DNA of 64,000 nucleotides. Source: Botryllus schlosseri (Eukaryota). A program made the translations under genes and the position numbers. The stretch lies in the NCBI GenBank assembly GCA_051294905.1, contig CM119379.1:20646001-20710000 (forward strand), read 5' to 3'. The notes beneath the pieces were generated by a model that did not search any database, was not told the DNA's origin, and saw only the letters and a list, made by a program, of their open reading frames with translations. Positions 626 to 54,089 of the stretch are shown piece by piece. Every line of letters starts with the position of its first letter. Position 1 is the stretch's first letter.

Positions 626-3600
626 GTGAGTTGAAGTTTTGTTCTGCGTACTCGAGTCTCATTGTTACAGGACGCGGTCGGCTGGTCTGTACTGGAGTAC
701 TTTAACGGAGCACTCTAGTAAGTTTTGCCTACTTGGACCAGGGTTGTAATGACTCGAGTCACGACTCATCTCAAGTTTTCGTTGACTCGACTTGAGTCGC
801 GTCATATCATCAATTTGTGTATTGACTCGACTTGTACTCGATTGATTGCGCACGACTCGACCAAGTCGTTTGGCTCGAGGCGTTCGATATGGTTTGTTCA
901 AGTCTCGTATCTCAGGACCGATAATTCAAGAATAGGCGATAGGCCCGTAAACTGTGTTTTGTCTGTTTGAATAATCATGTTTAGAGTGAGAATAGTATAG
1001 GGCGAGGCTTTCGAAATCACCCAAGAGTACTGAACAGTAAATACTATGACTTGGACTCGAGTCTTAACACTATGACTCGGACTCTACCCGTTGCTCCTAG
1101 ACTTGGTGGTGAATTGAAAATGACTCGACTTGGCTCGAGTCAAAACTATAAAAGTTAGATTTACTTATGACTTGGGACCTTGTGACTTGGTTACAACCCT
1201 TACTTGCACTTCTTCAGTAGCAATTATTTTGGAATACTTTTTCTAGTACAGTTTATTCGGCAAAACTGGATCTAGAATTCTTGACTTTCACTTACTTGGA
1301 AGTGCTACTACTACTGTTACTTGCGTGGATATTTACATCATTGCTTCTACTTCTTCTTGAGCGCCGACAATGAGTACTTTGACCATCTCGGATTGTTACC
1401 CACATTAGGTCGTTTCAAGACTGCAACAGCCTTTGTGGGACTTGGCATTTTCTTGAGGCGGTCAAATGTACAACGCCTGCATCGTAGGATGTGCCAGACC
1501 TGACCAGCACCGATTGGCCAATGGTCTTTTCGCTTGACATACCAATACATGGAATGCTTCGCTGTAACACGAGTGCTGCGCAGAAACTAGTTTTGCTTGT
1601 GAATAGTTGTAGAAGTGTCGCGCATAGAACTTTTTATCTCACATTGCGATTTCTTTGCTTTTCGTAGGAATGTACGGCAGCAATCCCTACCCCGTAACCA
1701 GTAAGAGTGCAACTGTCATCAGCAAAGGTATCATCGAAAGACCCGGAACCAGTAAGGGTAAAGACCTCACGCTGCAAACATTGGACGATGTCGAAGCGGA
1801 ATTCTTCAAAGCCGGTATTTGGAGATGCTAGAGATAGGTTTACTGTCGCGTGGTCAAGATTTTTTTTAGATGCATAGTTTCGATATGCGCTTGACCCGTT
1901 TTTGACTCTTCCCGGGCTATGTCGTTTCATTGCTGGGACAAAAAGTACATAACACTTCACCCAAGTTTTGTGTTTTCTTGTGGATAAATCTATCATGTTT
2001 TGGTCTTGTACATAGAAAATTTGCGAGTACAGCAACTCCGATAGTCTTTATCGGCCTTGGAAATCTGACTGATCCCGCTTCTATTGTTAAGATGACGCTG
2101 TCGGGTCCGAAGACGAAGACAACGGCGTCTTGGGATCCATGGACGTAAGTTATTTCAGCGTTACCACTTGAAAATGACCGTATTGTATCGCGTCAGATAT
2201 ACGTGCACGTACGGAAGATATTTACGAAAGTGTTTGTTCTGAACTTGATACATGTCACCTAACGTCCGGACTTGGAGAACTAGAGAATTCTAGCCGTCCT
2301 ATCAGACTATTTAAAATCTCATGCTAATGCAAAAGAACTCAGAATTGATATGAACAAAACTTGATCTTTGTTGTATTTCCGCTACGAATTCAGTAATTCT
2401 ATCCAATTAGAAAAATGGTGTAGCTATAATTCTGATCTAATTTGGAAAAGATGAAAATTTTCTTGTCCAACACGCAACCATCTCATTTTTCAGTCGGATT
2501 CTCAAGCTAATGCGGCGTTGCGGGAGCACGACGCGTCGATAGCGGCCGCGGAACAGGAGGAACAGCAATTGATGAAAGAGATCGAGGCGGAAGAGAACGC
2601 TCCGTGCGACACCGATTCCGAGACGACGATCGACGCGGACATGGTATTTCTTTTCTGCGTTACCCAGTTTGCCGCCGCGATTTTTTGAATTCGCAACAAT
2701 TCGTTCATGGCGGCGTACCTTATGAGGGCTAGTCTGTTTGATTATAGATTTTCACTGCCAATCGCTGGTTGATCATTGACTTTTCTCAGGCGGAGATCTG
2801 CGACATCGGTTGATCACCCCCGCAATTTAAACTAGAGTTTGCTCAGTACTTGAAGGATTCGATTTTGAGTAGGATATCAGGCTTCTAGTTGAGTATTCGA
2901 TGTCACTTGTTATAATTTTGTAAAGAGTATGAATGATGTGGAAATTCCAAACGTACACCTTTTATGCGACTACAAAAAATCGGGCAAGGTCTACACCGCA
3001 TTGAATATGATTTGATATTTTTTCCGGTCATACCTATTTCATTTCGCTCTGTGACAATGTGGAGGGATGATCACGAATTCACAAATATGCCATTTCCGCT
3101 AACAAGCGTAGCTTTGTACGACATTTTTTGTATGGTATGATACAACGACCGAGGTTTCAAGGCTTCCACGGTGGGAAAATAATATCGAAACTGGAATTAT
3201 CGTAGATAAATGAACTCTTAGTTGGAAAGGGGTTTGTAATTTCAGTACTTCAGCCCTAGTACCGACAAAGTCAGACACCTTCATTTGTGTCCAGGCGGGC
3301 TCTTCGAGCGCCAGCATTACTCCGCGGGACAGCCAGGACTGGAACGTGATCATGGCTCGGTTCGAATCCGAGCAGGAGCGACACAAGGGTTTGTCGTGGG
3401 GCGACATAACAGAAGAGGACGAAGTCAGGGAGCCGGGAAGGGCCGTTCAGATGCACGAGAAGCTGTCGTCGCCCTCCAGGAGAAGGTAGATCTTGATGGC
3501 ACGATCATATTCTGCGGCCGTGCTTTTCAACCTTTGGGTTGTACTCATTTGTGCGGATGACAAATGTGGTGTGGATGAAAATTGTGCATATGTTTTACTT

Positions 3601-6600
3601 TATCTGACGTGAAATCATTTAGATAAACCTAACAGAATATTAAATACAGTGGCTCCCTAACCTTTGTCGTTGCGATGCATTTGTAAATACAGTCTCACAG
3701 CAGGAGTGAATTATTATTTGCGCATGAGTATCAAGTAATCATAAATCGGGTTCGAAACCGGGTCTAAAGATCTAGCCATCGAGATACTAGAAGTCCTCTT
3801 ACAAAACCCAACAACTTATTTAATCGAAAAGGGCTTATGTGCACTAATCGACTTCGAAACAAGGAAAAATATTTGTCTTTACGAGACCCTCGATGGCCTA
3901 ATGCGGGGGGGGGGTTTGGAGCCTGAAATTGTGCCTAACTGGTCTGAAATTGCACTTGGTCATTTCATTTTGTGTACTAATTTTCGGTTGGTTTGTGCGC
4001 ATGGAAAAAGTTGAAAAGCACTGTACTATGGTATTATGCAAAGACGGTCAGCAATGAATTATTACTTTTTCTGAGTGCTAAAGAAAGATGTGTATTTACA
4101 CAAGTATTATTTCTGCTTACGTTTTCTGAAGCAAGACCGCTTGCTTTTTTGCGCTTTGAATGGAATCCGTATGCAGCAAGTGATGATAAAAAGGCCGAGT
4201 ATCATCTTCGGAAATGATAACAACACCTACAGCGATATTTATTCTGATGCTGCACGGTAGCTGTATTGCTACCGGTCTTTTTATATGTTTTTTTTTTTGT
4301 TGTGGCAAGTGATGAAAACAGGCCGAGTTTGATCCGCGGATGTGATGCGATCAGCACGAGCGATTCGGATTTTCTGATGCCGTCGTTTGAAATTCGATGG
4401 TATTTGCAAAGGGATAGGTAGTTCTGTCATATTGTGTGCCCGGTGCCTTTTTACACCAGCATTGCCTGTAATACGGAACTAGGCCAAAACAACTTTATCC
4501 TAATCAATGTCCAAAGAGTGAAAGGCTGGTAGTTTTGCCTAGAAGTGGAAGTCTTCTGAAAGTAGGCAAAATCTACTGTACCACCTTGATAAAAGTAGAA
4601 TTACGGTACTTCGTTACTGACCATACCACCTCTGGTTAAGATTCGCTGTAAAACGGCAAATACTCTTTGTTTTAAGCCGTGAAATTCACATTATCAGTTG
4701 TTTATTATTTGGTGGTCTTATTCTCTCACCGAAGGCCGAGGTTGATCAGTAGGCTCTCCAATTTCTTACTCTGGACTTGTTGTTTTTGTAGGACTCCCGC
4801 AGAGTCGAAAAGGAAAATGGAGGAAAAGCAACGTTCAGCCACTTTGCGTCGTCAGAAGATGGTCCGTGATAAGACGGAGAGAATCGGCTACCTGACCGTG
4901 CGCGTGGCCGATGTTAGAAGGCTTAAGGACGATCTCATCATGGGACGGACGGAACTCCTGAAAGAGCTTCATATGGTACTGACTTTGCCCTGGTTTTGAT
5001 TTTGTTGTAGACGTCATCAGTAATGAAGAACTTGCACTTTACCATGGTACTTGGTAGTTTTTACTTGTTTTACTCTAAATCGAATAGTTTTGTTTGTATA
5101 CTACTTCTACTGCGATGTTTTTTGATGCTGCATTAAATTTATCACTCCTTTATCAAGTTCAGCATTTTTTTATTGTCCCTGCCCTAAAATCGGTTATCAG
5201 TAACAAAGTACCTTATACCTTATCCCAGTACTCGAGTAAGTTTTATCCACTTTTTGCACTTACTCCGGTAGTCTTGTTCGTATGTTACAGGGATACTCAA
5301 CTCGGATACAAAAGTTTGAGATTTGGTTAGGTGCATTATAACTGTCGTGAAATAATTTACAGTCAAACAAATTTTTTAAGGTATAATTATATGCAATATA
5401 CGGTACAGTTGTATTCGCAAGACCAATAAGGAAACGTGTTTATTGTTCTGTTAGTCAAATCAATGTCAATGGATTTAGTTTTATTTATAAAAAAAGAAGG
5501 AAATACTGAGACAGATAGACCTTGATCCAACGCTCAAAAGGTCCGCCAGTTGAGTGTCCATGGTATACTGCACTATTTCAACAGTGTTTTGATGCTGAAA
5601 TAAATTCATCGCCCCCTTATCGACATATCTTTACCCCAGGAAAAACTACAGCGCGCTGAGCAGCAGCGCGCCTTGAAACTGATGAAGATCGTTCGCAAGG
5701 CGCAGGCCGAGGAGACCAAGGTCAACGAGATTCTGTTCATCAATGAGCTGCAGGAGCAGAACAAGCGGCACGATGTGCTAAGCAGGATTCTGGAGCACGA
5801 CGCCAGGCTGCAGGAGATCCAGCAGGAGAGGTCGAAGATGTTCGAGGTCAAGGCGGCCAAGGAGGAGAATGCCAAGGTAGTTAAATCAGTGTCACAGTGC
5901 TAGACCGTTTTGGTCATAGGGATTACGACACACTATACCTGGCCACTATGTTGGTCACTGGTCAGGAATGGAATACATCTGCTGTGGTCAGGTCATTTCG
6001 CCCACAAGTTCTCATTGCCGGAAATTCGTTTGCAGGAAAGGCGACGCCTAATCGAAAAGGAGCGGCAAGACCGACTCAGCGAATTGATCAACAAACGCAA
6101 GGAGCACGATTCCAGGATCGAGCAATTGAAGCAAGAGAGAGAAAAGGAGAGGGAGAAGCAGGCCAGAGAAAAAGAAAGGTGAGGTTCGCTGTAGACACTT
6201 TGTCTGGGATCCTGATCCCGGAAATCGTACACCGTGAAAGGATGTATGCGCTTTTTTCAACTGGAATGCAGGCCCTGTAGACAGTAACTTCTGCTAAAAT
6301 GGTGTATGGATGTTGATTTGCGGGCTTTGTTTCAGTTTGTGTTCTTGTCGCGAATTTATGTGCTGTGTTCTGAACGATTCGAGATTTTGGAATACGGCAG
6401 AGCTGGTAAATTGTCCCTGCTTACTCATGCATTGACATCGTCGCAATGTTTGGCAATCGATTCCTATTTATTATGCAGCTTTCATTTTGTACTGCTATTT
6501 CACAGGGATCGTAAAACAAGACTGTCTGCACTTAACGCGGCCCAGCAGGAAGCTGTCGAAGAATTGCAAAAGAAAATCCAGACCAAGGTACGAGAATTAT

Positions 6601-9600
6601 ATCCTGTTCCTTTATCCACCAACGTTTTTTTGGTGTCGGTAGATTGCGCTGATTACCATGGGCCGGTTTCTTCAACGTACAAGCTGTGTGGCAAATGATG
6701 ATATAAAGGCCGATTGTATCTTCGGATATGAAATCAAAAACCTGAAGCGAAATATCCTGATGCCACTTTGTTGTGTTATGTCCTTGACGGGACGTGGTCC
6801 TTAACAAAGTTCATTAGTACTCGCCGATAGGTGGGTTTTTTCAGCGTTAAAGCTGTGTGGCAAATGATGATATAAAGGCCGATTGTATCTTCGGATATGA
6901 AATCAAACACCTGAAGCGAAATATACTGATGCCACTTTACTCTCTTACGCCCTCAACAGGACGCGGTCGTTCACAAGCTTTTTTAGTACTCGCATGACTT
7001 ACTCTAGCTGTAGAACCTGTGTGGCTATGTTTTAAAGTATTATTTGAACAAATAGGTTTTTGAGACAGTGTGGTTATTTTTATATGACTGTCTAATGTGA
7101 GTGTGTGTGATGCAAATTAATTTCTGACATTGCCCGGAAGCGGTTTTGTTACAGGGGCCTCGTGATATTATACTGTTACACTAGGGTTACTTTATTTATA
7201 AGAGGACACTTTTTCAAAATTTTCAGACTTATAATACTGGAGTGAATTCCTGAATGAATGGTAAATTTCTCCCGACCTTGTGGTCGCTTGACTAAATAAA
7301 AGGTCATCTTTGCTGCTTGAATCCGGATTTACCAGCTTTCTATGAGATGTTTCGTTGGTTGACTAAAACAAATGTCATTTTCCTGGCTGAAGTCCCGAAA
7401 AACCCGTCAGTCCGTTACTTGGCCGCTGATTTCCTGTATCGCAGTCCAATTTCCACGTACATTTAACCAGGATTCTCAAAAAAAGAGGACATTGAGTTGT
7501 CCTCCGCGGACACTTTCAAAAAGGACGTATGGTAAACCTATGTTATACTAACACATTTCTAGACGCAGAATATCAGAGATCAGTAATTAGTAGCCTGAAA
7601 TTGTCAAATTTAACCAAGTTTGTTATCTACAGCATGACGAAAGTGAACGGCGTCACCAGGAGCAATTGGAGCAACGGAAAGAAAAAGCTTTGGAGCTGTC
7701 TCTTGGCCGATTTTCTCTGTCGTCAAGCGGCAACATGCAGCCAGGCGATTTACAGAACACCATCTCGGAAGGGGATAAGGCGACTAGGAACAACTCGGCA
7801 AGCGCTCAATTAGATCTGGCATCACTGCAGAGAGAGTAAGTCACTTTTCGTGGTGTTTCTAGCTATAGGAATCCTGTATATGTGGTTTTTTTTGCCAGGG
7901 AGGACCGGGACAATGGTAAAGGCGACGCGACGAGCCTCAATAAATCAATGGTATCCGAAAACACCATTATTTCCCCGCGAAACGTACCTTCTGCGGAAGA
8001 AAAGCGAGTACGTTTTCTAGCGATAGGGGGAATCTATACAGTTACACGAGCGCAACGCCCAGCGGGGGTCCAAGTTTTCATAGTTGATACTCAAGTAGAA
8101 GTAGATGTGACGTCGTAAATTTCTACCCGAGCACGAGTAAAAGTGCAGATTCCTGAGCAAGTGAAAAAGTGGGCATTCTAGGCCTAGTTTAGCCAAAAAT
8201 ACTAAATACGAAAGTACCTGTCACTGACACCATGGATTGTAAAATTGCTGCGTGGCTGCCTTTTTGTCTGTAACTCTGTTACGACTGTGCCGAGACTACT
8301 AACTTTTGTACGGTATGTAGTTTGTAAAGGAGACATGGTTTTCCGATGGATGTTCCATCACTTTTTGGAATGCAATTATCTTGACAACCGATACAGATAG
8401 CCCCTGTATCGTGGCCGCTGAGTATATTTTCGAAAGCTGCACCTGATTACATTGCCGTTTGTCATGTTGCATTACTCGCGGTGACATCTTTTGAGTTAAA
8501 AAGTAGGCAGCCTCAGGCATACTACTAGGAGTATGAACTATTTACTTAATGCATGTCTTTACCCTTACTTTCTTACTCTTTGGAATCGCTACTTCTAATC
8601 TACTCTAATAGTAATTCTGGCTACATTTACTTAGTTCGTGCTTGTGTTCCGTGTTCCCAGTGGCATTCGTTTGCAGCAAGTGATGATAAAAAGGCCGAGT
8701 ATTATCTTCGGATATGGTAACAACACCCATAGCGATATTTATTCTGATGCTGCTCAGTGGCTGTATTGTCGCATTAAGGCTAGCGATCCGATGAGGGTTG
8801 CTGACGTAGGTCTGCACTGTCTCCACTGTATAGATGCGTCTCCCCCGTTTTCAATTTCGGCATTTTGAAGTCTTATGCATGGGGACTGGAGTGGTGATCG
8901 ATGCTCCATTGCTCAGCTGTAACGTGTTACATGTCTACAGCCGGATAATTCTAGTTTTCGAATTGGACTAATCATAGCGGAATCCCGGTAATCCAATGCT
9001 AATCTGATTTGTGAATTATTTCTATGCTCCAATTTTTTTTTGATATAATGTGTGGTTTTCCTGAAAACGCTACAGAAGAACTATATAGTGCGGAACGAGC
9101 CAAGCTTGCTGTGCAGACATTTGCCATTCTCGTGCTTATGAGAGATTTGATATGAACTGAACTTTATTCAATTTCTTAGTTTTCGAGAATTTAGTAATTT
9201 TAATTCCTATCTGATACGGAAAAAACTGTGTAGCTATAATTCTAATTGTAATCCAAAATGAATAAAAACTGTAGCTATCATTCAATTCTAGGCTAATTTG
9301 GGAATAACTGTGTAGCTATATTCCTATTTCTACCGTTATGCTGGAGAATTCCCGAACGCATATAGACTGATGATAAAATGCCCTTGTTCGCACGCGGTGT
9401 TCGGCCTTCAACGTGCTGGTATTGATTTTCGTACACGGCAACACGGCACGGGAAAGGAAAATACCCTGTCAGTCCTTACGAGATTGCGAATCGCTGGATT
9501 AGCGGCGAAATGTTCGAGGTTATTTCCGTCGCCGTAACCATAGGGCGATAAACCCCCCTGAAAAATTTTGTTTGTCACAGGTTTTTCAAGTTTCCATTTA

Positions 9601-12600
9601 TCTCGTTGGTCACAAGTTCATTCGGCGTGTCGGCTTGACAGTTAATGAACTCGACACTTGGTGGTCCCTAATCCTAGTGTAGCCTACCTTGAAACGTCGC
9701 TCTGGCTGTAGCCTATCCCCGAACCTATCCCCAACCCCCAACCCGACCACATTAATACTTACGTACCGAGTGCGCCAGACTTGGCCAATTAGAAGATCAT
9801 CAGCTTTTCCAAATTAGATTAGAATTAACATCACAGCTACAAAGTTTTTTCCCGAATTAGAGTATTATTAGAATTATAACTACACAGTTTTTTCCAAGTT
9901 AGAATTATTGAGTTCGCGAAAACTTCAAGATTGAATCAACTTACGTTCATATCGAATCCTAGTTCTTTCATGAACACGAGAATAGCAAATGTCTGTACAC
10001 AGCAAGCTTGGCCCTTTTCGTGCTGTACAGTTCTGTAGTATTTACAGGAAAACCAGTAATTCGTTTAGAATTAGCATTAACGCATAGAAATATTTCACAA
10101 ATTAGATTATATTTAGATTATCGGCATTTCGCTCTAATCAGTCCAACTACACAACTGGAATGATGTAGTTGTCCCAAGTCGGCAAGTGCCGAATTCACCA
10201 AATGCCGTATATCAGAATTCACGCTCATATTCAGGGTAACATTTAGTTTCGGAAGTATTCATGCAATATAGATGCATCGCTTTCATAATAATATTAATAA
10301 GTATTTATTACATTTCTATTGCCAAATTCATCGAGTGGCGAATTCAACAAGTGCCGTATATCAATTCACGCTCATAATCAGGGAAATGTTCATTTTCCAA
10401 TATTTTTCTACTACATGGATGCATCACTTTCATAATAGCAATAATAGTTATTACATTTCTAATGCCGAATTCACCAAGTGCCGAATTGACTGGTAACTAT
10501 CTCGCGAGACTTGCACAACCACGGTGATACATCAATAGTCGATAGATAACACTCAATAGTGGCCTTGTTGCGTTCGCGAATCTAGCCGAACTCGTGTTTT
10601 CGAAGGCGGCGAAGGAAAAGGAAGCGCAGATAACGGAGAGGAAGAGAGCCATGAAGAAACGCGCGAAGAAGCTGAAGACTAGAATGACGACGAGGTGCGT
10701 TGCTATTGTCACGTCATGCGCGGTAATGCTATGCGTCGCGCGTTATCTGGCGTGATTTTTATCTATGGCGAGGTTTTCCCTGAATACAGTTTTAATTACC
10801 AATGGACTATGGCCGATCTGAATGGCTTGCGGTAGTTCAAATGCTGCTATGTATATTATATCAAGGGAAACGACTTTCTCGGTATTAGCTCCTGCACATG
10901 ATAATCGAGATCCTGCCGTAAAATCCGACACAGACCCGTTCAGCTTCAAACACGCCCGCTTTCAGTTTTGGGAAGATCTATAGGAAACCTTGCTCTGTAC
11001 TTCCTCGAAAACACGAACTAGTACGCTTCTATTCCGCAGAGGCCGCGAGTTTTTGAAAGCGCTGGACGAAAAATCGACTTCGATGTCCGCTTCAAAGAGC
11101 AAGTACGTTTCAATGTCCCGTTTTCTTTAGCCTTCTCGGTGAATCGCGAGCGCCGTGTGTTGCAGGGTGGCGCGTCTCGTGAAGGATATCGGCCGGAAAC
11201 TGACGTCACAGAAGGAGGCCAGCGGCCCGTGGCCCGCGAATCGTGCGGCCGCGCTAGACCGCTCTCTCGGAGAATTGATCAGACTGCTCGAAAAGAAGGT
11301 AGATTTTTATATCGGGTATTACATCACAAACTACAATACAGAGATAGATAATTTTAGTTGTAGTTCTAATTCTACTCTGCTGGCAACACAGCGCTAAACG
11401 CAGCGCGTGCGCGCGATGTGGCAAATGATGATATAAAGGCCGATTGCATCTTCGGATATGATATTACCAAACCGAAGCGAAACAACCTGATGCCGCACTT
11501 TCGCCATTTTAATGTGACAAGTATCACCGCGGTAATGGCTGGCAATGCCGTGTTTCCGAGATCGGTAATTCACGTGTTCTACGAGATATCTGAGCGTCAA
11601 AAGACTTGTGTATGTTCGTGCTGTGCTGATCGTATACTGAAAATAAATGGTTAGATTTCACGGAAACTCATCCTTAGAGTGTACTGGAATCATTCTTTAT
11701 TTATATGCGTGATATGATAGAATGGCGCGCCGTGGCGCCTGTCGAGATTTACCTCTTCCCAGAGGCGGTCAGTGACAAAAGTACTTGAGCCTTTCCGGAT
11801 TGCCGAAGTATGTTTTCCTGCGTGCGCTGCTTCAGGGGTTGTGTTTTAGGCCGCTACCACAGTTTTTGAGCAGAATAACTTACTTTTCGCGATATCGATT
11901 TTGAGAAGTAGAACGCTGTTTTGGGATAAGTCTGCAACACTTCAACGGGAGAAATTATCAAAGGAGCCGCGCGAAATAGCCGGCGGTAACTTGATATATT
12001 TTCAGAAGACTCTACCGATGTTATGTATCCATTAGTCACTTCGCGTCGGTCGCGTGAATACAACTTCGGAAGTAGCCAAGTCTTTTTTAAACTACGTACT
12101 CGGGGCATTTTGAGACCCTTGATATTCTACGTCCACTTGTAGTAGTCTTGACTTGTCTTGAAATTGCAAATTTCGATTGTAATTGAGTAACAATTTACGA
12201 CAGCAACGCTGACTACTTCGACAATGACCGCGTCTTGCGAATTACCGGTATTGCGTTGCATCCGATATCCTGTTATCTATAGACAGCCAAAAACATAAAG
12301 TCCACAGCCCCTATTTTAAATCTACTCTTTGAAACTAGTTACTTACTTCGAGTGGAAATATAAAATGAAATCAACTAGTTTCAAATAGTAGATTTAATGT
12401 AAATTCCTACTAAATTACGTGTAGAAGTAGCAATTTATGACACTTATTTCGAGTGGAAATATAAAATGAAAGTATCATAAATTGCTTCTTCTACTTGTAA
12501 TTTGGTAGGAATTTACGGCTTTACTTCTACTTGTAATTCAGTAGCGACGCTAACTACCCCCTGACGTGGTAGCGCTCACGTATGCGTTTTCCTATTTCGA

Positions 12601-15600
12601 AAGCGGACAGTTATTTCCATTTATCCCGTCCTCGTCAATCATATTTCGCGGCAACTGAAGGCCGCTGAAAAAAAATCGACCTTCGCGGAAGCCTTCTCGC
12701 GGAAATAAATCGTCTTTTAAGCCACGCGTCGAAGGGTATCGGATCCGGCGGTCTATGGTTACAAGCGCGGCGGTGTCGGGCGTTTGCCGGCGGCTTACCG
12801 CGCGAAAGTGAAAAATGCGGGCCGCCTGCCAATTAGCGAGCCCGCGTTATTTGTCTTTCCGAAGCGATTAGCGTAGTAATGAAAAAGCGCCCGCTCTATG
12901 CGTAATCTAGGTAAGATGAAATATTGTTAAATAATGGTCCGCGGTGCTTGTAACGAGTTGCGCGAATGTACGAAGCCGTTAAGGCCTGTAAGCGGAGTAC
13001 CTCATGACGGAGTTCTGATCATTGATCAATCAACTTGATAGTCGTTTGTTTTTAGTGCGTGTCCTTCCGGTAAGCCTCGTTTCAAGATCAAAACGCTACA
13101 TCTGACGACGGGTCTGTTACCAATGCGTTGTGTACGCATTACAATGTATTGGTAACGTTCGAGGGAGTGATTCACGAATATCGCATTGATTATTCCTGAT
13201 GCCGGAATGTGTATACAGATGAGTCTTTAGCCACGCAAAATTACATCATCTAAAAGCCAAGCAAACTATATTGTGAAGTTAGCCTCGTTAACATCCAACC
13301 TAGCTGTGTCTGATAATATTTTGTGATGATAAAATGGCGGTAAAACGGCGTGGAAAGTGACGTAACAGGCGTGCGCAATAACGGAACGCGTTAATAACGC
13401 CAAGCTAGAAGTCGTCGGAATTAATTTCGATTTAAGGTGGTATTATGCTATTATCGATAATATGACTAAATATCATTGACTTTGAAAAAACAACAAGCTA
13501 TTATTTTCATTGAACTTCCGTGAGCCGCTTGAGACCAGTCCACGGCGCCGAATTTACCGAACCTAGCCTCTCGGATGCGGGCGGTGGCGCTGTTAAGCTT
13601 CTTCGAATGAGTCTTGTTACAACAGGTTGGGTATAGCAATAAATTCAAGGTGTTATTGTAAGAGGGTCAGTTACCGATGTAATAAATCTCGTTCTCAACA
13701 TCTCGTCCTTTCGCGGCCTACGTATTCTCGAATTCGTCCTAATTGGATCGCTAACCGTTTTTTTTTCTCATGAGACTCTCCTGGTTGGCCGAAAATATCC
13801 GCTGGAAATAAGTAGCAATTTGCGGTGTGCTAAAGGGTAAGGTGAAGGTCAATACCTATACGCCGCGGCCTTCTTATCTGGCGTATATTAACGCGCAGCG
13901 CGGCCCGATAAAAGCGTCCATACGCGCGGTAGTTGGGTGTTCTCAAATTGCTGATGCTATCATCTTAGGCGCGTATGGTCATACGATACGGCGGCCTGTA
14001 ATTCATAACCTTGACATATCCGCGGTGTTAACTGTTAAGCCATTCTCAGTTTAAAGCAATGGTTTTATGCTACCGGTGTTCTTCTGATTCGGTATCGTGT
14101 TCCATCCGGTATTGAGCACGGCCATCGTCGTTAATGCGGTGTCAAGGCTATTCTTGCATACGCGATTTCGAGGTGACATTGGTTCTGTCGGTGCTGTTTT
14201 TCACTATTTTCCTGTTGATAAGACACGCTACCATCATTCGTAATTACCACGCGTGTATTTACCTGTGATTAGATAATGGAGGCGCGTTTTAAGCCGTAAA
14301 GTTTAGTCAAGTATGAATTTACGTACTGGTTTTTCCGTTTTTGGCATTGCGATTTTGCGATGTTGTTTGGTTAGGTGGCTTGGATTATAGAGTTATACCG
14401 CTCTGCGCACGTGCCGGCCGTACGCTTTCATATTGTCAATAATTTGGTCATCCAGGCCAAACGTAACGGCTGGATGGGCTGGCGATCTATTATCCCGTGC
14501 TTACCAAACACGGTGGACACTATGTTTCACCTTTCGCGCCCGCTGTGTCGGTACGCCACTTGAGTGGACAAGAGGGATTTGTGTTATCGCGATTCGCTTT
14601 GTCGCCAGGCGACGCAGATGTGAATTCAGCGCCGGTATACAAGCTAACCAACCGTTTATCAGCAGTTCAGCACGCCCGACTGCGCTTCGATGTGGGGCAT
14701 AATATAAAACACGGAATTGCAGTCAAACTACGAACAGCTACCCAACGATTCATGGCAAATCACCACCGAATACCGCGATATATTTCCCATTTATAATCCG
14801 GGGCGATAATGGCTCCAAAGCTGGGCAGTTATCGAGATATCGTATTATAGAATCTCAAAATTTTAAATTTTCCCCGATGCGGCTGTGTTCGGATTGGTTA
14901 CTTGTGCGAGGCCTCTTTTCGGGAATTCAATATGGGCTTTTTTATGTATACTGGAGTGATAATTCGGAATCGATAGCACATGGAGTTCAGTAGTTTAGTG
15001 GTTACAACAGCCGATTAGGGATCCGCATTATAAATTGGATGTACTGTTATTCGACGCATAAATCCGAAAAAGCGAACTACGAAATGACATCAACCGTCAA
15101 CGGTAGATATTTGCAACGCCTGCTTACTTGGATTTCTCGACGGCTTTGGCTCCAGAGTCCGTTAATATTATGAGCACGTGGGCTAAAGTTAGGGTTTGGG
15201 TAAGGTTAATTTTGGTGTTAGGGTCACACGCGCGAGTGTTGCATGTCCTACTGTCATTTTTCATTGTGCCGCATGCATAATGTCCTGCAACCCGCTCACA
15301 GACCCAATACCAATGTGGCCCTTGATTTTTGACCTTAAACCGCCGCGGCTCTATTTGTCTCGAGGCTTACGCCTGGCTTTTCATCCCTGGGGCGCGAAAT
15401 TTCTGTCACCCGATCCGACAAGCAAACCCCCTCCTCCCTAATCCAATCCGTCAATAATTAAATCCAGCCCGGCCTTTGTAGGCGTGCGGCGCGCGCGCGG
15501 CCCGACGAAAAATTCACCCCCGCAGGAACCCGCCTAATCAATCGGCAAACACGAAACGAGGTGCCGGAATTCCGCGGATTTGCGCACGTAATTGAGATTA

Positions 15601-51600: not shown

Positions 51601-52974
51601 AGTTGAGCCGCCGCTTATTTGCTGAAGGTGAAATCCATTGATCTGGTACCCACGGGGGTTATTTTACCCCGGGAGTTCACACGGACGCGCGCTCGCCTTT
51701 GTCATTCGTAATCCGGGGTCAGGTTCTGCGGTAGGCTCGCGGCTTAGGGATTCCTTGAGGAATTCAAATTTGGGACCGCGCTTGTCGTCTCGCGAATCGG
51801 TTTTGTGATCTCGCGCGCGGTTCGGTTCTCGTAAATTCGCACCGAGTCTTCTGTGGTTCTGATGTCAAGTTTGGAGGGTGTTCTTGTGGGCGGTGTGTAT
51901 TTCGTGTGAGGTTCCGCCGCCGTAGATACTGGCCCGTTATAGCTGTTCAGTACAAGCCATCCGGGGTACAGAACTGTAGAATTACACAAAACAATACGGT
52001 ATCTTTATTTGTTAATTTATTCACTAAAAGATTTTCGACCTACTTTCATCAGGGTTACCAGTGAATTCGGGATATTTAATTCGTAACTCGGCGGCCCCTA
52101 ATCCGAATCCGAGCCTACCATAACTCTAACGTAACTACTAACCCTTAACCCGAATACATTAATACAACACAGCAAGTGCCGAATTCACCAGTTGCCATCC
52201 ATCCTTATTCAAGCGCATATTCAATGAAACGTGCATTTTCGAATTCATCGATATATTGATGTATGCCGCTTACGTAATATTAAGGGGTTTTTGTTTTTGA
52301 CATGTCAAAATTTTGTCAAAATTTTAGCGTTAGGCAAAAAAGTGTCAAAATTGTTTACAAAGTCAAAATATTTTCGCAACCTCCATTTTTTGTATCGTAG
52401 ATGTTTGCACTGTCGGTGAACTTAGCATTTGATATTTTACAGCTTGTAGCCTATTCTATAGGCCTACCGTTGCAGACGGTCCATTATCTGCTCATTGCGA
52501 ATCATAAATGGTCATATGAAACAAATAGGTTGAAGGCCAAACTACTTCGTAAGGAAGGACAGTTCCAATCACAAATGAAGAGAAGTAATACAATTCTAAC
52601 ATGATGTGCGAAAACGCCTAATTTGCATACATGAGGGCAAATTTTTGTCAAAATTTGAGGTAAAAAAATATCAAAATTTTCATTTTTTTAGGTCAGAAGC
52701 TTCCGTTTTTTGGGTAAAAAAAACCACCCGAGTAATAATAATAATTATAACGTCGAGTTCACCAAGCGCCTTTTCTCGACAGGAAATCGTCCATTCCGGA
52801 GCGATGCCGACCGTGCTACAGCAGCTTTGCGTTCTCCCGTTCGCCTACTTCAGCAACCCCAAGCTGTCGAGCGTGCTGTTCCCGACCCTGATCGCCTGCT
52901 GCCATCGCAACCCGGCCAATCTCGCGATGCTGGAGCAAGAAGCCAGCGGCTCGCTGTTGTCCGGTTACATCAAG
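404..52974 (+). CDS. SCAPER: SCAPER orthologue, partial spliced model of 22 exons; 5' exons and last exon not in window
   Basis: All 22 exons join in one frame through GT-AG introns. Motifs match vertebrate SCAPER as I recall it: DGWEKV, SWGDITEE..EPGRAVQMHEKLSSPSRR, KAQAEETKVNEILFINELQEQNKRHDVLS, RLSALNAAQQEAVEELQKKIQTKHDESERRH, ALDRSLGELIRLLEK, SYVVSSGVVDKL, LGAEGVSLEFRH, LLHEVIICVGHF, PTVLQQLCVLPFAYFSNPKLSSVLFPTLIACC. Confidence 0.97.
739..1201. mobile_element. hAT-type MITE
   Basis: TIR cagggttgtaa / ttacaaccct; 8-bp flanks acttggac / acttgcac (7/8); many internal gactcga/gacttg motifs. Confidence 0.8.
1668..1814 (+). CDS. SCAPER: SCAPER exon (GMYGSNPY...LDDVEAEFFKA), phase 1-1
   Basis: Pyrimidine tract plus tag acceptor, donor GTATTT; open frame with phases matching both neighbours. 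Confidence 0.7.
2092..2144 (+). CDS. SCAPER: SCAPER small exon (DDAVGSEDEDNGVLGSMD), phase 1-0
   Basis: AAG acceptor, donor GTAAGT at 2145; needed to reconcile phases of the flanking exons. Confidence 0.7.
2494..2643 (+). CDS. SCAPER: SCAPER exon (SDSQANAAL...EEQQLMKEIEAEEN...DADM), phase 0-0
   Basis: Acceptor catttttcag, donor GTATTT; EEQQLMKEIEAEEN resembles vertebrate EEEQLTREIEAEEN. Confidence 0.9.
3295..3485 (+). CDS. SCAPER: SCAPER exon (…DWNVIMARFE…SWGDI…MHEKLSSPSRR), phase 0-2
   Basis: Acceptor tgtgtccag, donor GTAGAT; highly conserved MHEKLSSPSR motif. Confidence 0.95.
4173..4253 (+). ncRNA. Box C/D sno/scaRNA, U2-antisense family, copy 1 (subfamily A)
   Basis: Terminal stem GCAGCA/TGCTGC, box C GTGATGA 4180-4186, box D CTGA 4244-4247; AAAAGGCCGAG complementary to U2 nt 8-18 and AGCGAT to U2 nt 1-6. 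Confidence 0.85.
4302..4383 (+). ncRNA. Box C/D sno/scaRNA, U2-antisense family, copy 2 (divergent, best D'/C')
   Basis: Stem GTGGCA/TGCCGT, box C 4309-4315, D' TTGA 4329-4332, C' GTGATG 4342-4347, box D 4374-4377; AGGCCGAG pairs U2 8-15 and GAGCGAT pairs U2 1-7. Confidence 0.82.
4792..4975 (+). CDS. SCAPER: SCAPER exon (RTPAESKRKMEEKQ…ELHM), phase 2-0
   Basis: Acceptor gtttttgtag, donor GTACTG; start of coiled coil. Confidence 0.92.
5640..5876 (+). CDS. SCAPER: SCAPER exon (EKLQRAEQQR…EENAK), phase 0-0
   Basis: Acceptor ttaccccag, donor GTAGTT; KVNEILFINELQEQNKRHDVLS. Confidence 0.96.
6036..6178 (+). CDS. SCAPER: SCAPER exon (ERRRLIEKERQDRL…EKER), phase 0-2
   Basis: Acceptor tttgcag, donor GTGAGG; charged coiled coil. 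Confidence 0.94.
6506..6587 (+). CDS. SCAPER: SCAPER exon (DRKTRLSALNAAQQEAVEELQKKIQTK), phase 2-0
   Basis: Acceptor atttcacag, donor GTACGA; near-identical to the vertebrate motif. Confidence 0.95.
6688..6766 (+). ncRNA. Box C/D sno/scaRNA, U2-antisense family, copy 3 (subfamily B)
   Basis: Stem GTGGCA/TGCCAC, box C ATGATGA 6695-6701, box D 6757-6760; AAAGGCCGA (6705-6713) pairs U2 9-17 and GAAGCGA (6744-6750) pairs U2 2-8. Confidence 0.85.
6857..6935 (+). ncRNA. Box C/D sno/scaRNA, U2-antisense family, copy 4 (subfamily B, tandem duplicate of copy 3)
   Basis: Stem GTGGCA/TGCCAC, box C 6864-6870, box D 6926-6929; same two antisense elements. Confidence 0.85.
7182..7540. mobile_element. hAT-type MITE (TAGGGTTAC end)
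   Basis: TIR tagggttac / ggtaaaccta; flanks tgttacac / tgttatac (7/8). Confidence 0.8.
7633..7835 (+). CDS. SCAPER: SCAPER exon (HDESERRHQEQLEQRKEKALELSLGR…LQRE), phase 0-2
   Basis: Acceptor ttatctacag, donor GTAAGT at 7836. Confidence 0.93.
7899..8007 (+). CDS. SCAPER: SCAPER exon (EDRDNGKG…SAEEKR), phase 2-0
   Basis: Acceptor tttttttgccag after a 63-nt intron, donor GTACGT; phases fit. Confidence 0.75.
8673..8753 (+). ncRNA. Box C/D sno/scaRNA, U2-antisense family, copy 5 (subfamily A)
   Basis: Stem GCAGCA/TGCTGC, box C 8680-8686, box D 8744-8747; AAAAGGCCGAG and AGCGAT. Confidence 0.85.
8935..10168. mobile_element. Foldback/MITE-like element with ~400-bp imperfect inverted arms
   Basis: About 8935-9330 is the reverse complement of about 9800-10168. 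Single arms recur near 2330-2460, 26140-26300, 40545-40730, 47680-48020 and 49060-49180. Confidence 0.75.
10180..10490 (+). repeat. Two tandem ~150-bp units of a dispersed repeat (caagtgccgaattcacc)
   Basis: Unit repeated twice; related copies at about 30790-30900 and 52050-52260. Confidence 0.7.
10606..10694 (+). CDS. SCAPER: SCAPER exon (AAKEKEAQITERKRAMKKRAKKLKTRMTT), phase 0-2
   Basis: AAG acceptor, donor GTGCGT; matches vertebrate KNKKKAKKIKARM. Confidence 0.9.
11040..11102 (+). CDS. SCAPER: SCAPER exon (RGREFLKALDEKSTSMSASKSK), phase 2-2
   Basis: Acceptor ctattccgcag, donor GTACGT. Confidence 0.8.
11166..11298 (+). CDS. SCAPER: SCAPER exon (VARLVKDI…WPANRAAALDRSLGELIRLLEKK), phase 2-0
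   Basis: Acceptor gttgcag after a 63-nt intron, donor GTAGAT. Confidence 0.93.
11418..11496 (+). ncRNA. Box C/D sno/scaRNA, U2-antisense family, copy 6 (subfamily B)
   Basis: Stem GTGGCA/TGCCGC, box C 11425-11431, box D 11487-11490; AAAGGCCGA and GAAGCGA. Confidence 0.83.
11759..12250. mobile_element. Fragment of an AGTA-rich hAT-like non-autonomous family
   Basis: End cagaggcggtcagtgacaaaagtact matches the reverse of ends at about 4607-4635 and 8212-8225; interior related to 21300-21590. Boundaries approximate. Confidence 0.45.
18922..19434. mobile_element. hAT-type MITE (TAGGGCT end)
   Basis: TIR tagggctcggca / tgcccagcccta; opposite-orientation homologue of 25646-26135. Confidence 0.8.
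20175..20302 (+). CDS. SCAPER: SCAPER exon (DQEVKNSFRACGGFETLEKIL…LPDR), phase 0-2
   Basis: Acceptor gtgtgcag, donor GTGAAC; resembles vertebrate FQAAGGLTALEHIL. Confidence 0.88.
21003..21126 (+). CDS. SCAPER: SCAPER exon (TIANAAAALKTAC…LIDVLSLLLT), phase 2-0
   Basis: Acceptor ttttccttcag, donor GTAAGC. Confidence 0.88.
21590..21627 (-). ncRNA. Minimal hammerhead motif, intact core, truncated stem I
   Basis: GGUAUCCC-CUGAUGA-GAGUCAGCC-GAAA-AGCU-UC/GGAAA; palindromic stem III AAGCUU. Confidence 0.55.
22490..23610. mobile_element. Hammerhead-bearing repeat (inverted pair of degenerate motifs at 22595-22636 - and 23541-23580 +) interrupted by a pogo MITE
   Basis: aaacccgaatattttcggttgacactcgtc versus aacgagtgtcggccgaaagtattcgggttt; homology to 24680-24885, 38540-38705 and 49700-49990. 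Confidence 0.7.
22696..23517. mobile_element. Pogo/Tc1-mariner-type MITE
   Basis: TIR ccgtaattttcc / ggaaaattacgg flanked by TA on both sides. Confidence 0.85.
24680..24885 (-). mobile_element. Hammerhead-bearing repeat copy with degenerate core
   Basis: AUUACCC-CUGACGA-GUGUCAGUC-UAAA-AUGC-CC-GGGUA; flanks homologous to the other copies. Confidence 0.7.
24985..25345 (-). repeat. Dispersed module with internal gcagatgcgatt…aggccagc subrepeats
   Basis: Reverse complement of 32040-32400; related to the interior of the pogo MITEs. Confidence 0.75.
25400..25600. repeat. Partial tandem duplication (aacctaacaattt…agccagta…aatttgaaaaaaaa); related sequence on the opposite strand near 59490-59760
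   Basis: Direct repeat visible at about 25432-25476 and 25547-25590. Confidence 0.55.
25646..26135. mobile_element. hAT-type MITE (TAGGGCT end)
   Basis: TIR tagggctgggca / tgcccagcccca; flanks ctgctcat / ctgctcgt (7/8). Fragments at about 3110-3260 and 58250-58400. Confidence 0.85.
26451..26665 (+). CDS. SCAPER: SCAPER exon (KSMPHDG…LLDAVAFAL…QIR), phase 0-2
   Basis: Acceptor cttgttacag, donor GTAAAG; phases fit. Confidence 0.82.
27537..27656 (+). CDS. SCAPER: SCAPER exon (DNKQLTKAV…FLSRGLDVVS), phase 2-2
   Basis: Acceptor gttttcag, donor GTGACT; aligns to vertebrate FNNRVQDLIS. Confidence 0.85.
28048..28194 (+). CDS. SCAPER: SCAPER exon (YVVSSGVVDKLSAYLGSVRGEIE…LALR), phase 2-2
   Basis: Acceptor gcgttcag, donor GTCGGT; conserved YVV..G..DKL…V.G motif. 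Confidence 0.92.
29148..29538 (+). CDS. SCAPER: SCAPER exon (…DPTQLLLTLYHTELMGVVGVLYGVLLRG…LNAVAELDIDLLQ), phase 2-0
   Basis: Acceptor aattgcag, donor GTATGG; resembles DPTGL…TDLAGVLHMLYCVLFHG. Confidence 0.92.
31314..32500 (-). mobile_element. Non-autonomous hAT element with transposase C-terminal relic and nested module
   Basis: TIR tagggttagt / tccaacccta; flanks gtgcgtac / gtccgtac (7/8). Minus frame 31561-31755 gives LLTIQPISMEAERAF…FVTK, like the hAT dimerisation domain. Confidence 0.82.
32738..32916 (+). mobile_element. tRNA-derived SINE
   Basis: A box tagcgtaatggt, degenerate B box ggattagatcc (32785-32795), followed by a non-tRNA body gggtcacaccaaagac…gcttggcgctca. Confidence 0.65.
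32925..34102. mobile_element. hAT/Charlie-like MITE
   Basis: TIR caggggttgggaaact / agtttgcccacccctg; perfect 8-bp TSD ctatatct; subterminal gcggcccgc repeats. Partial relative at about 19950-20040. Confidence 0.9.
33104..33407. mobile_element. hAT/Charlie-like MITE nested in 32925-34102
   Basis: TIR ctgtggttctca / tgagaaccactg; flanks ttctaaga / ttctaggg. Confidence 0.82.
34324..35118. mobile_element. Second copy of the pogo-type MITE, right end truncated
   Basis: Colinear with 22696-23517; the right TIR is absent. Confidence 0.8.
38540..38705. mobile_element. Hammerhead-bearing repeat, inverted pair of degenerate motifs
   Basis: Minus copy 38556-38585 (CUGGCGA…GAAA AUAU UC) and plus copy 38632-38680 (CUGACAA…). 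Confidence 0.7.
42259..42408 (+). CDS. SCAPER: SCAPER exon (ESLGAEGVSLEFRHI…LLHEVIICVGHFALQNKKNQ), phase 0-0
   Basis: Acceptor gcttttcag, donor GTCAGT; highly conserved. Confidence 0.96.
46035..46890 (-). mobile_element. Non-autonomous hAT element with dimerisation-domain relic (46322-46510)
   Basis: TIR tagggcgattttt / aaaaatcgcccta; ORF with QPTTAAVERSFSILG. Confidence 0.82.
48030..48856 (-). mobile_element. Second copy of the same hAT derivative (relic ORF 48334-48585)
   Basis: Colinear with 46035-46890; QPTAAAVERSSSILG. Confidence 0.8.
49700..49990. mobile_element. Hammerhead-bearing repeat, intact minus copy plus degenerate inverted plus copy (49875-49925)
   Basis: Direct homology to the other family members, including the A/T-rich tail tttatttcaatatgaatatattatt. 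Confidence 0.72.
49764..49806 (-). ncRNA. Minimal type I hammerhead ribozyme motif with intact core
   Basis: Minus strand reads AUAACCC-CUGAUGA-GUGUCAGCC-GAAA-AAUAU-UC/GGGUUUAU: conserved core, single G-C stem II, short stem III, stem I AACCC/GGGUU. Predicted cleavage between 49772 and 49771. Confidence 0.7.
50925..51110. repeat. Degenerate ~30-bp minisatellite (gttctagttgcgagttttgaaaatcgagtt)
   Basis: Several imperfect units; explains the repetitive minus-strand ORFs LDFQNAQLEQLDFQNSPL. Confidence 0.6.
52281..52731 (+). mobile_element. Internally deleted, inverted third copy of the same hAT derivative
   Basis: Both terminal regions homologous; transposase relic deleted; ends about 50 bp before a SCAPER acceptor. 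Confidence 0.75.
52783..52974 (+). CDS. SCAPER: SCAPER exon (EIVHSGAMPTVLQQLCVLPF…LLSGYIK), phase 0-0; probably penultimate
   Basis: Acceptor ttctcgacag, donor GTAATG; highly conserved. Confidence 0.96.
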
Positions 52975-54089
52975 GTAATGATCTGTTTGCCCTGTTGTGT
53001 GACTAATCGATTGGATATCGGGACATTGTTAACGGTAGTAATCGGAAATAGTATGGAGAATTGGTGAAACCGTATTTCGAGGCGTTGCGCGATTGCGCGT
53101 TGGCGATGGTGTCGGATTTTGTGGTACGGAAGTGATTTCACTGTCGACAATCCGGAATTATGCTTTACATCGTGACTGTGTAGACCCGAGCTCCGTTTTA
53201 GTTACTCTCGATTCTGCCCTTATAAACACAGCTCATAATTCATGACACCGATAGCCCCAACCGTTATCTCGCGTTAATAACGTAAACAACGAGACGACGA
53301 TTGCTTCAGTCTTTGGTGTACGTGTCGCGAACGCGCTGTTTTGCTTTTGTGGACTTCCGGTAGCGATGCTTTACCGATACGCGGGTATGCCAAAGTCCTT
53401 TTCTCAATAGCTTATGATGCTATTCCTCAAAGGGGCACTACATCCGCTCTAAATATGATGTAGTCTCAAATTGAAGATGAAATCGTGAAAAAAATTGTGA
53501 CAGCAGCCGTTTTCTTCGGAAAGCCGCCGTATGGTTCTAGCGAGTAGGGACAGATGATTTTTTTCGAGTACTACACGCCCATTTCCGCTAAGAGCTATAT
53601 CGAGAACGGGAATTCTAATTTCGATACATTTTACCCGCCTTGAAGTCTTGGAAGATTCACGCGCTTTCACAAAGTGCGATGAAATAGACATGGTCTTAAA
53701 AACACCAAATAATTTTCAGCTGGTGTAAAACTGGCATTATCTTTGTGGTCGCATAATAGGTGCGTATTCGAACTCTCCTCCACATTCGTTCAAATCTGTT
53801 GCGGATTACATGGGCGATGCGCATTTGAAATGCGTGGCGCCCTTTCGCGCTAATTGGGCGCTCGAATGCCGGGCTTTCGGTACCGTGAAGCGTAATGAGC
53901 GCTGCTGCACTGGTCAACTGCGCTCGCTGGTTAAGGCTCGGTAATCCCAAACAAACAATCTGCGGTCGTCATTAGTTGTGCTGTTGTGTCTTGTTCGGCG
54001 GCCTGGCACTGAGTCGCGTGTCGGTTGTGGTGTAGTGCATAGTTAGCCGTGGATTTGGATTTCAAAATGGGGTATCAGGATGTTATAAG

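Follow-up and report, generated by a model that had tools for sequence, protein, structure and literature searches.

Six compact box C/D-like units in SCAPER introns of the tunicate Botryllus schlosseri are probable guides for the U2 5' end

Four introns of a SCAPER gene in the tunicate Botryllus schlosseri house six short units with the anatomy of box C/D RNAs. The stretch of DNA analysed here, 64 kb of contig CM119379.1 (GenBank assembly GCA_051294905.1, forward-strand positions 20,646,001 to 20,710,000) and hereafter called the window, carries all six on its + strand, in the sense orientation of the host gene: c1 and c2 lie together in one intron, c3 and c4 together in another, and c5 and c6 each alone (Table 1). 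Reading of window positions 3900-11800 and alignment of the six put their lengths at 79-83 nucleotides (nt).

Homology identifies the host gene as SCAPER. The surrounding exons are on the + strand with AG/GT boundaries, and those flanking the units are collinear with Ciona SCAPER. A phmmer search with the C-terminal exon (52.6-53.06 kb) returned full-length proteins with the Pfam domain SCAPER_N, annotated as S phase cyclin A-associated protein in the ER; the best match is from Ciona (XP_078484370.1) and the next from Phallusia. Individual exons compared with Pfam gave no useful match, nor did exon B against a protein atlas, and a chance open reading frame overlapping c6 matched nothing. A preliminary description of this DNA, made from its letters, had placed the units in four SCAPER introns, and exon mapping and the collinearity with Ciona bear this out.

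Each unit has box C, RUGAUGA, near its 5' end and box D, CUGA, near its 3' end; both are present in all six, with invariant columns. The 5' side runs from a terminal stem through a 3-nt bulge to GAUGA, which together make up the RUGAUGA of box C, and at the other end box D directly adjoins the 3' strand of the stem: judged by sequence, this is the layout of a box C/D kink-turn. The stem has 6-7 base pairs (bp), with 90.5-91.7% of alignment cells pairing as against 20-27% after the partner is slid by one column, and at two positions compensatory changes have altered both sides with pairing retained. Between the boxes, the blocks AGGCCGA and AGCGA are invariant in all six units, separated by a central element, AUC-NNNN-GAU, whose loop is UUCG in five units and CGCG in c2, and which has an A.A mismatch in c1. 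A putative C' box (RUGA) stands at a fixed position in five of the six units; the D' box is degenerate, its final A alone being invariant. The best C'/D' motif among the six is that of c2, with UUGA, a 9-nt linker and a near-canonical C' box, GUGAUGC. Folding each sequence alone does not set the units apart (z-scores -2.6 to +0.7), nor would it be expected to for box C/D RNAs.

A covariance model built from the six units (R1) recovered them from the 64 kb window at 75-103 bits, with the next-best match at 16.5 bits. Window positions 13324-13341, TGATGATAAAATGGCGGT, resemble box C and the start of the stretch that follows it, yet no AGCGA arm, box D or stem comes after, and we do not count this site as a seventh copy.

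Table 1. Box C/D-like units and SCAPER exons in the window, with scores from the R1 model; types A and B are the two spacing classes described in the text
Feature	Position	Strand	R1 score (bits)	Remarks
SCAPER exon, 3' part	3337..3486	+		ends ...HEKLSSPSRRR; 66% identity to Ciona SCAPER residues 501-547; c1 and c2 in next intron
Unit c1, type A	4172..4254	+	101	box C at 4180, box D at 4244; 7-bp terminal stem
Unit c2, divergent type A	4302..4383	+	75	
SCAPER exon A	4793..4975	+		bounded by AG and GT; ends intron of c1 and c2
SCAPER exon B	5640..5877	+		73% identity to Ciona SCAPER residues 609-687, E = 9e-35
SCAPER exon D	6507..6588	+		next intron, 6589-7632, carries c3 and c4
Unit c3, type B	6688..6766	+	96.6	
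Unit c4, type B	6857..6935	+		tandem duplicate of c3 (covariance model, duplication analysis)
SCAPER exon E	7633..7838	+		exon mapping
Unit c5, type A	8673..8753	+	103	92.8% identical to c1
SCAPER exon I	11167..11300	+		52% identity to Ciona SCAPER residues 891-934; c6 117 nt downstream, in next intron
Unit c6, type B	11417..11497	+	90.7	
C-terminal SCAPER exon (approximate bounds)	52783..53000	+		64% identity to Ciona SCAPER XP_078484370.1

Conservation among the copies is concentrated in the core elements. In the core (box C, the two guide cores and box D) 22 of 23 columns are invariant; outside it and the stem, 17 of 51 are (Fisher p = 2e-7), and spacers fall to 62-75% identity between subtypes. 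A 169-nt tandem duplication (6658-6824 and 6827-6993) gave rise to c3 and c4, and within it the unit itself is identical at 77 of 79 positions versus 65 of 88 in the co-duplicated flanks (p = 8e-6); this excess would reflect either purifying selection or gene conversion limited to the unit. The gap between the two guide cores is 32 nt in all six units, maintained by compensating indels: around the central element it is divided into 5 nt before and 17 after in c1, c2 and c5, and into 4 and 18 in c3, c4 and c6. These are two spacing classes one nucleotide apart, which we call type A and type B, respectively. The preliminary description of six units of about 80 nt with a terminal stem, box C and box D thus holds, as does its remark that AGGCCGA and AGCGA are kept while the spacers drift; its central, mostly UUCG-capped hairpin stands as to the loop, but with only 3 conserved bp the stem is weaker than that word implies.

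The 5' end of U2 small nuclear RNA (snRNA) is complementary to each of the two conserved blocks. The U2 terminus used for comparison, AUCGCUUCUCGGCCUUUU, was taken from PMC2064619 and bioRxiv 2021.08.01.454689, and is a vertebrate sequence that may not equal that of this species. The first block lies within arm 1, which pairs as AAAAGGCCGAG with U2 nt 8-18 in c1 and c5, as AGGCCGAG with nt 8-15 in c2, and as AAAGGCCGA with nt 9-17 in c3, c4 and c6; these 8-11 Watson-Crick pairs have free energies of -14.9 to -18.9 kcal/mol, versus about -7 to -8 for shuffled targets. The second block lies within arm 2, which forms 6-7 pairs with U2 nt 1-8: AGCGAU with nt 1-6 in c1 and c5, GAGCGAU with nt 1-7 in c2 (one G.U), and GAAGCGA with nt 2-8 in c3, c4 and c6. 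When the U2 18-mer was shuffled 200,000 times with its composition preserved, both cores turned up in order in only 3 cases. Together the arms tile U2 nt 1-18 and claim no nucleotide twice, with a junction that shifts between copies: where arm 1 reaches C8, arm 2 ends at U6 or U7, and where arm 1 ends at U9, arm 2 extends to C8. Gm11 and Gm12, which fall in the arm 1 duplex, are documented U2 modifications. The antisense match put forward in the preliminary description is upheld against the printed U2 sequence, and its two methylated positions stand as documented sites.

The two arms probably differ in role. Between arm 2 and box D lie 6 to 10 nt, depending on the copy, and no pair forms at the fifth position upstream of box D, so arm 2 cannot itself measure a methylation site. 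Its AGCGA block, not next to box D, is conserved and complementary to the U2 sequence abutting the arm 1 duplex, which is what defines extra base-pairing: elements in the second guide region of single-guide small nucleolar RNAs (snoRNAs) that are complementary to the flank of the site and raise methylation up to five-fold (van Nues et al. 2011). The likeness extends to the position of arm 2 in the second guide region and its complementarity beside the site. The published cases differ in that they target ribosomal RNA, whereas the target here is the capped 5' terminus of U2, and in that the two arms of our units abut without overlap, at a junction that shifts between paralogues.

A guide of this kind is known in vertebrates. 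Deryusheva et al. assigned the former orphan SNORD89 (HBII-289; RF00578) to U2 Gm12 and confirmed the assignment in a yeast system (PMC6984369). Song et al. reported SNORD89-U2 chimeras at the U2 5' end, a knockdown that lowers Gm11 by 72% and Gm12 by 37%, and a guide adjoining a divergent D' box, "UUGC"; their human and mouse SNORD89 primers and antisense oligonucleotides print AAAAGGCCGAAUUGCAGUGU and CCUGAAGCGA, and so contain both blocks as well (PMC11863803). The novelty that the preliminary description implied for the guide itself is thereby lost, as SNORD89 already carries the same blocks and the units are not a new class. The main text of the two papers, figures apart, does not mention the second arm, and our literature search found no report of a tunicate SNORD89. 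The Rfam consensus of SNORD89, ...AAUGAUGA..AAAAGGCCGAAUUGCA.....cugaAGCGaac...CUGA, has both blocks in the same order (AAAAGGCCGA and GAAGCGA). Like SNORD89, the units are intronic and of the box C/D type. In both, an AAAGGCCGA antisense element immediately follows box C and precedes a degenerate D' box (UUGC/UGCA), a second conserved element, GAAGCGA, lies nearer the 3' end, and U2 G11 and G12 are the predicted targets. The AGCGA core of that second element is common to all copies and the full GAAGCGA is found in c3, c4 and c6; c6 has GGCCGA-UUGCA as in vertebrate SNORD89, and c3 and c4 have CCUGAAGCGAA. The tunicate form differs in its length (79-83 nt versus a 114-position model), in the 9-nt linker that replaces the apical hairpin of about 35 nt in the vertebrate model, and in having six copies, two spacing classes and SCAPER as host; the host of human SNORD89 we take to be RNF149.

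Rfam does not recognise this relationship at its own thresholds. The preliminary description had proposed Infernal searches against Rfam, and at gathering thresholds these found no match in the window. A permissive scan of the window gave sub-threshold box C/D matches only, among them SNORD89 at 21.3 bits for c6, 18.2 for c1, 17.9 for c3 and 16.9 for c4, with c2 and c5 not listed, where the gathering threshold is 41.

A further comparison is with the intronic small Cajal body-specific RNAs (scaRNAs) of the box C/D type in vertebrates, which are likewise intronic guides for methylation of spliceosomal snRNAs. Their apical hairpin has a GU/UG wobble stem of 20-40 nt for Cajal body targeting, which is absent from our units: none of the six has a GU repeat, and the apical element is AUC-UUCG-GAU. 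The label "scaRNA" is unsupported for the units because they lack the wobble stem.

Which G each copy would serve depends on where the D' box is read, and because that box is degenerate we tried two registers. Register 1 takes the four nucleotides ending at the invariant A (AUCA in c1, UUGA in c2, UGUA in c3 and c4, AUUA in c5, UGCA in c6), and puts G11 at the fifth paired position in type A and G12 in type B. Register 2, one nucleotide upstream as in Song et al., takes UAUC in c1, UUUG in c2, UUGU in c3 and c4, UAUU in c5 and UUGC in c6, and puts G12 at that position in type A and C13 in type B. Every copy thus has G11 or G12 at +5 in one or both plausible registers, the register itself being ambiguous. 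We favour register 1 because it ends at the invariant A, because it is the reading in which c2 has the C'/D' motif described above, and because both of its predicted sites are real modifications. From GGCCGA to the invariant A there are five nucleotides in type A, as in human SNORD89, and four in type B. With this type A spacing human SNORD89 would reach G11 in register 1 and G12 in register 2, which fits its effect on both. Unusual C'/D' motifs are known to let one snoRNA methylate two adjacent nucleotides, and in one instance this required extra base-pairing (van Nues and Watkins 2017). We tentatively raise the possibility, on the spacing in register 1, of a division of labour in which type A would measure to G11 and type B to G12, with both classes still clamping U2 nt 1-18.

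The preliminary description had also suggested a search of SCAPER introns in related genomes. No such unit was found in the SCAPER loci of GCA_041260155.1 and GCA_032854445.2 or in the part of the amphioxus locus (Branchiostoma belcheri) that was covered, and Rfam at gathering thresholds was empty there too; SCAPER hosting therefore looks lineage-specific. A loose motif match in the first of these loci is due to chance. In a close relative (Logan run SRR25569784), whose exon B is 83% identical, the contig stops with UGUGGCAUAUGAUGACAGA, some 190 nt past the homologue of exon D, which is the position of c3. The break, at 1427-1445, falls exactly at the start of a box C/D-like unit; by its sequence and place this is probably a c3-position copy cut by the contig end, and a break there is expected if the unit is multi-copy in that species too. 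Another contig from a close relative (L006) ends 50 nt after its exon I homologue, too short to cover a unit. A pattern scan of metagenome contigs (55 loci) gave best model scores of at most 21 bits and no terminal stems, and we regard its hits as chance matches.

The host locus has some further features of its own. Ciona SCAPER has a Pfam match to SCAPER_N and none to the zf-met zinc finger, which is present in three non-tunicate SCAPERs, as compared with window positions 7680-10660; judging by these proteins, loss of the zinc finger may be common to tunicates. The intron of c5 contains a 53-nt inverted repeat (9218-9270 and 9843-9895) that is 79% complementary, with its arms 572 nt apart, and the surrounding region, about 9060-10040, looks by eye like a larger imperfect palindrome, possibly a foldback insertion or one resembling a miniature inverted-repeat transposable element. 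Just upstream of the next SCAPER exon, positions 10173-10490 hold a tandem repeat of two to three copies, each about 147 nt long and with 74-86% identity among them.

The best explanation of the six units, and in our judgement a likely one, is that they are intronic box C/D guides for U2 G11 and G12: functional equivalents of SNORD89, not members by the Rfam model, and probably its distant orthologues. The preliminary description had also read them as U2 G11/G12 guides, a reading that complementarity and the match to the SNORD89 blocks support. From what is observed directly, namely the anatomy, conservation pattern, complementarity and host gene, we infer expression, protein binding, methylation and the G served by each copy. 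Released from introns of the SCAPER pre-mRNA, the units would assemble the usual box C/D proteins on their terminal C/D kink-turn. Following box C, the stretch AAAGGCCGA, whose final G may be absent, would then pair with U2 nt 8/9-17/18 just upstream of the degenerate D' box. G12, G11 or both would thereby come to the fifth paired position, where fibrillarin would add the 2'-O-methyl group. The AGCGA-core stretch, in an otherwise unused second guide region, would pair with U2 nt 1-8 as accessory extra base-pairing, and with one arm to each side of the C'/D' module, U2 nt 1-18 would be clamped.

Several observations weigh against this explanation. The SNORD89 scores are no better than those of unrelated C/D families, some of which reach equal or higher values, and with scores at this generic level the case for common descent comes down to the guide elements plus a few letters free of constraint (UUGCA, and the CCU that precedes GAAGCGA). 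The U2 comparison was made with a vertebrate 5' end, which may differ from that of this species. The degenerate D' box makes the register ambiguous, and under register 2 type B would measure to C13, where no modification is known. Between the units and the next 3' splice site there are 400-1800 nt, and two introns carry two units each; such distances and sharing of introns are not the vertebrate optimum for splicing-coupled processing.

Some of the same points would fit working U2 G11/G12 guides that originated independently of SNORD89, with the shared blocks dictated by the target alone. The target does constrain both blocks, and noise-level Rfam scores, a different host gene, three other animal SCAPER loci without units and the short length relative to the SNORD89 model are all in keeping with independent origin. 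We nevertheless consider it unlikely, as both lineages have two arms laid out alike and in one order, along with shared letters that are not complementary to U2 (UUGCA after GGCCGA in c6, CCU before GAAGCGA in c3 and c4), and tunicates are the sister group of vertebrates.

The units might instead attach to the U2 5' end for purposes other than guided methylation, either chaperoning it or masking nt 1-18 so that U6 cannot pair there. The very degenerate D' box and a two-arm clamp of 15-17 nt, which exceeds the need of a methylation guide, are compatible with such a role, and Song et al. describe contacts between snoRNAs and targets where methylation is low, for some of which they suggest roles that do not depend on modification (PMC11863803). 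But the same antisense element in SNORD89 directs methylation in yeast and mammalian cells, and the C' box (RUGA) and last A of the D' box are kept at a fixed position, so that binding alone is quite improbable. It is hardly credible that the copies are decaying or unexpressed duplicates without function: multiple local duplications, unusual splice-site distances and introns shared by two units could suggest as much, yet the core is invariant while spacers and flanks diverge, the stems carry compensatory changes, the 32-nt spacing is kept by compensating indels, and all six copies are in sense orientation.

Read as SNORD89-like guides, the units bear on a modification that matters for splicing: U2 Gm12 is reported to be essential for splicing in vitro, and vertebrate Gm11 and Gm12 depend on SNORD89. 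A guide of the SNORD89 kind for U2 Gm11/Gm12 was already known; new here are the compact tunicate form, with six copies and a new host gene, the conserved accessory arm directed at the U2 5' terminus and the one-nucleotide spacing dimorphism. The second arm, against the capped U2 5' end, is conserved and co-varies in extent with the first, and paralogues one nucleotide apart in spacing amount to a natural test of the choice between adjacent sites. If the division of labour between type A and type B is true, it would be a natural dissection of the way in which one vertebrate SNORD89 methylates two adjacent nucleotides, and comparative evidence that the 5'-terminal accessory arm is required. That these RNAs are missed by the Rfam SNORD89 model matters for the annotation of invertebrate chordate genomes, and, provided that the units are orthologues of SNORD89, finding the two-arm guide in a tunicate suggests an origin earlier than the vertebrates.

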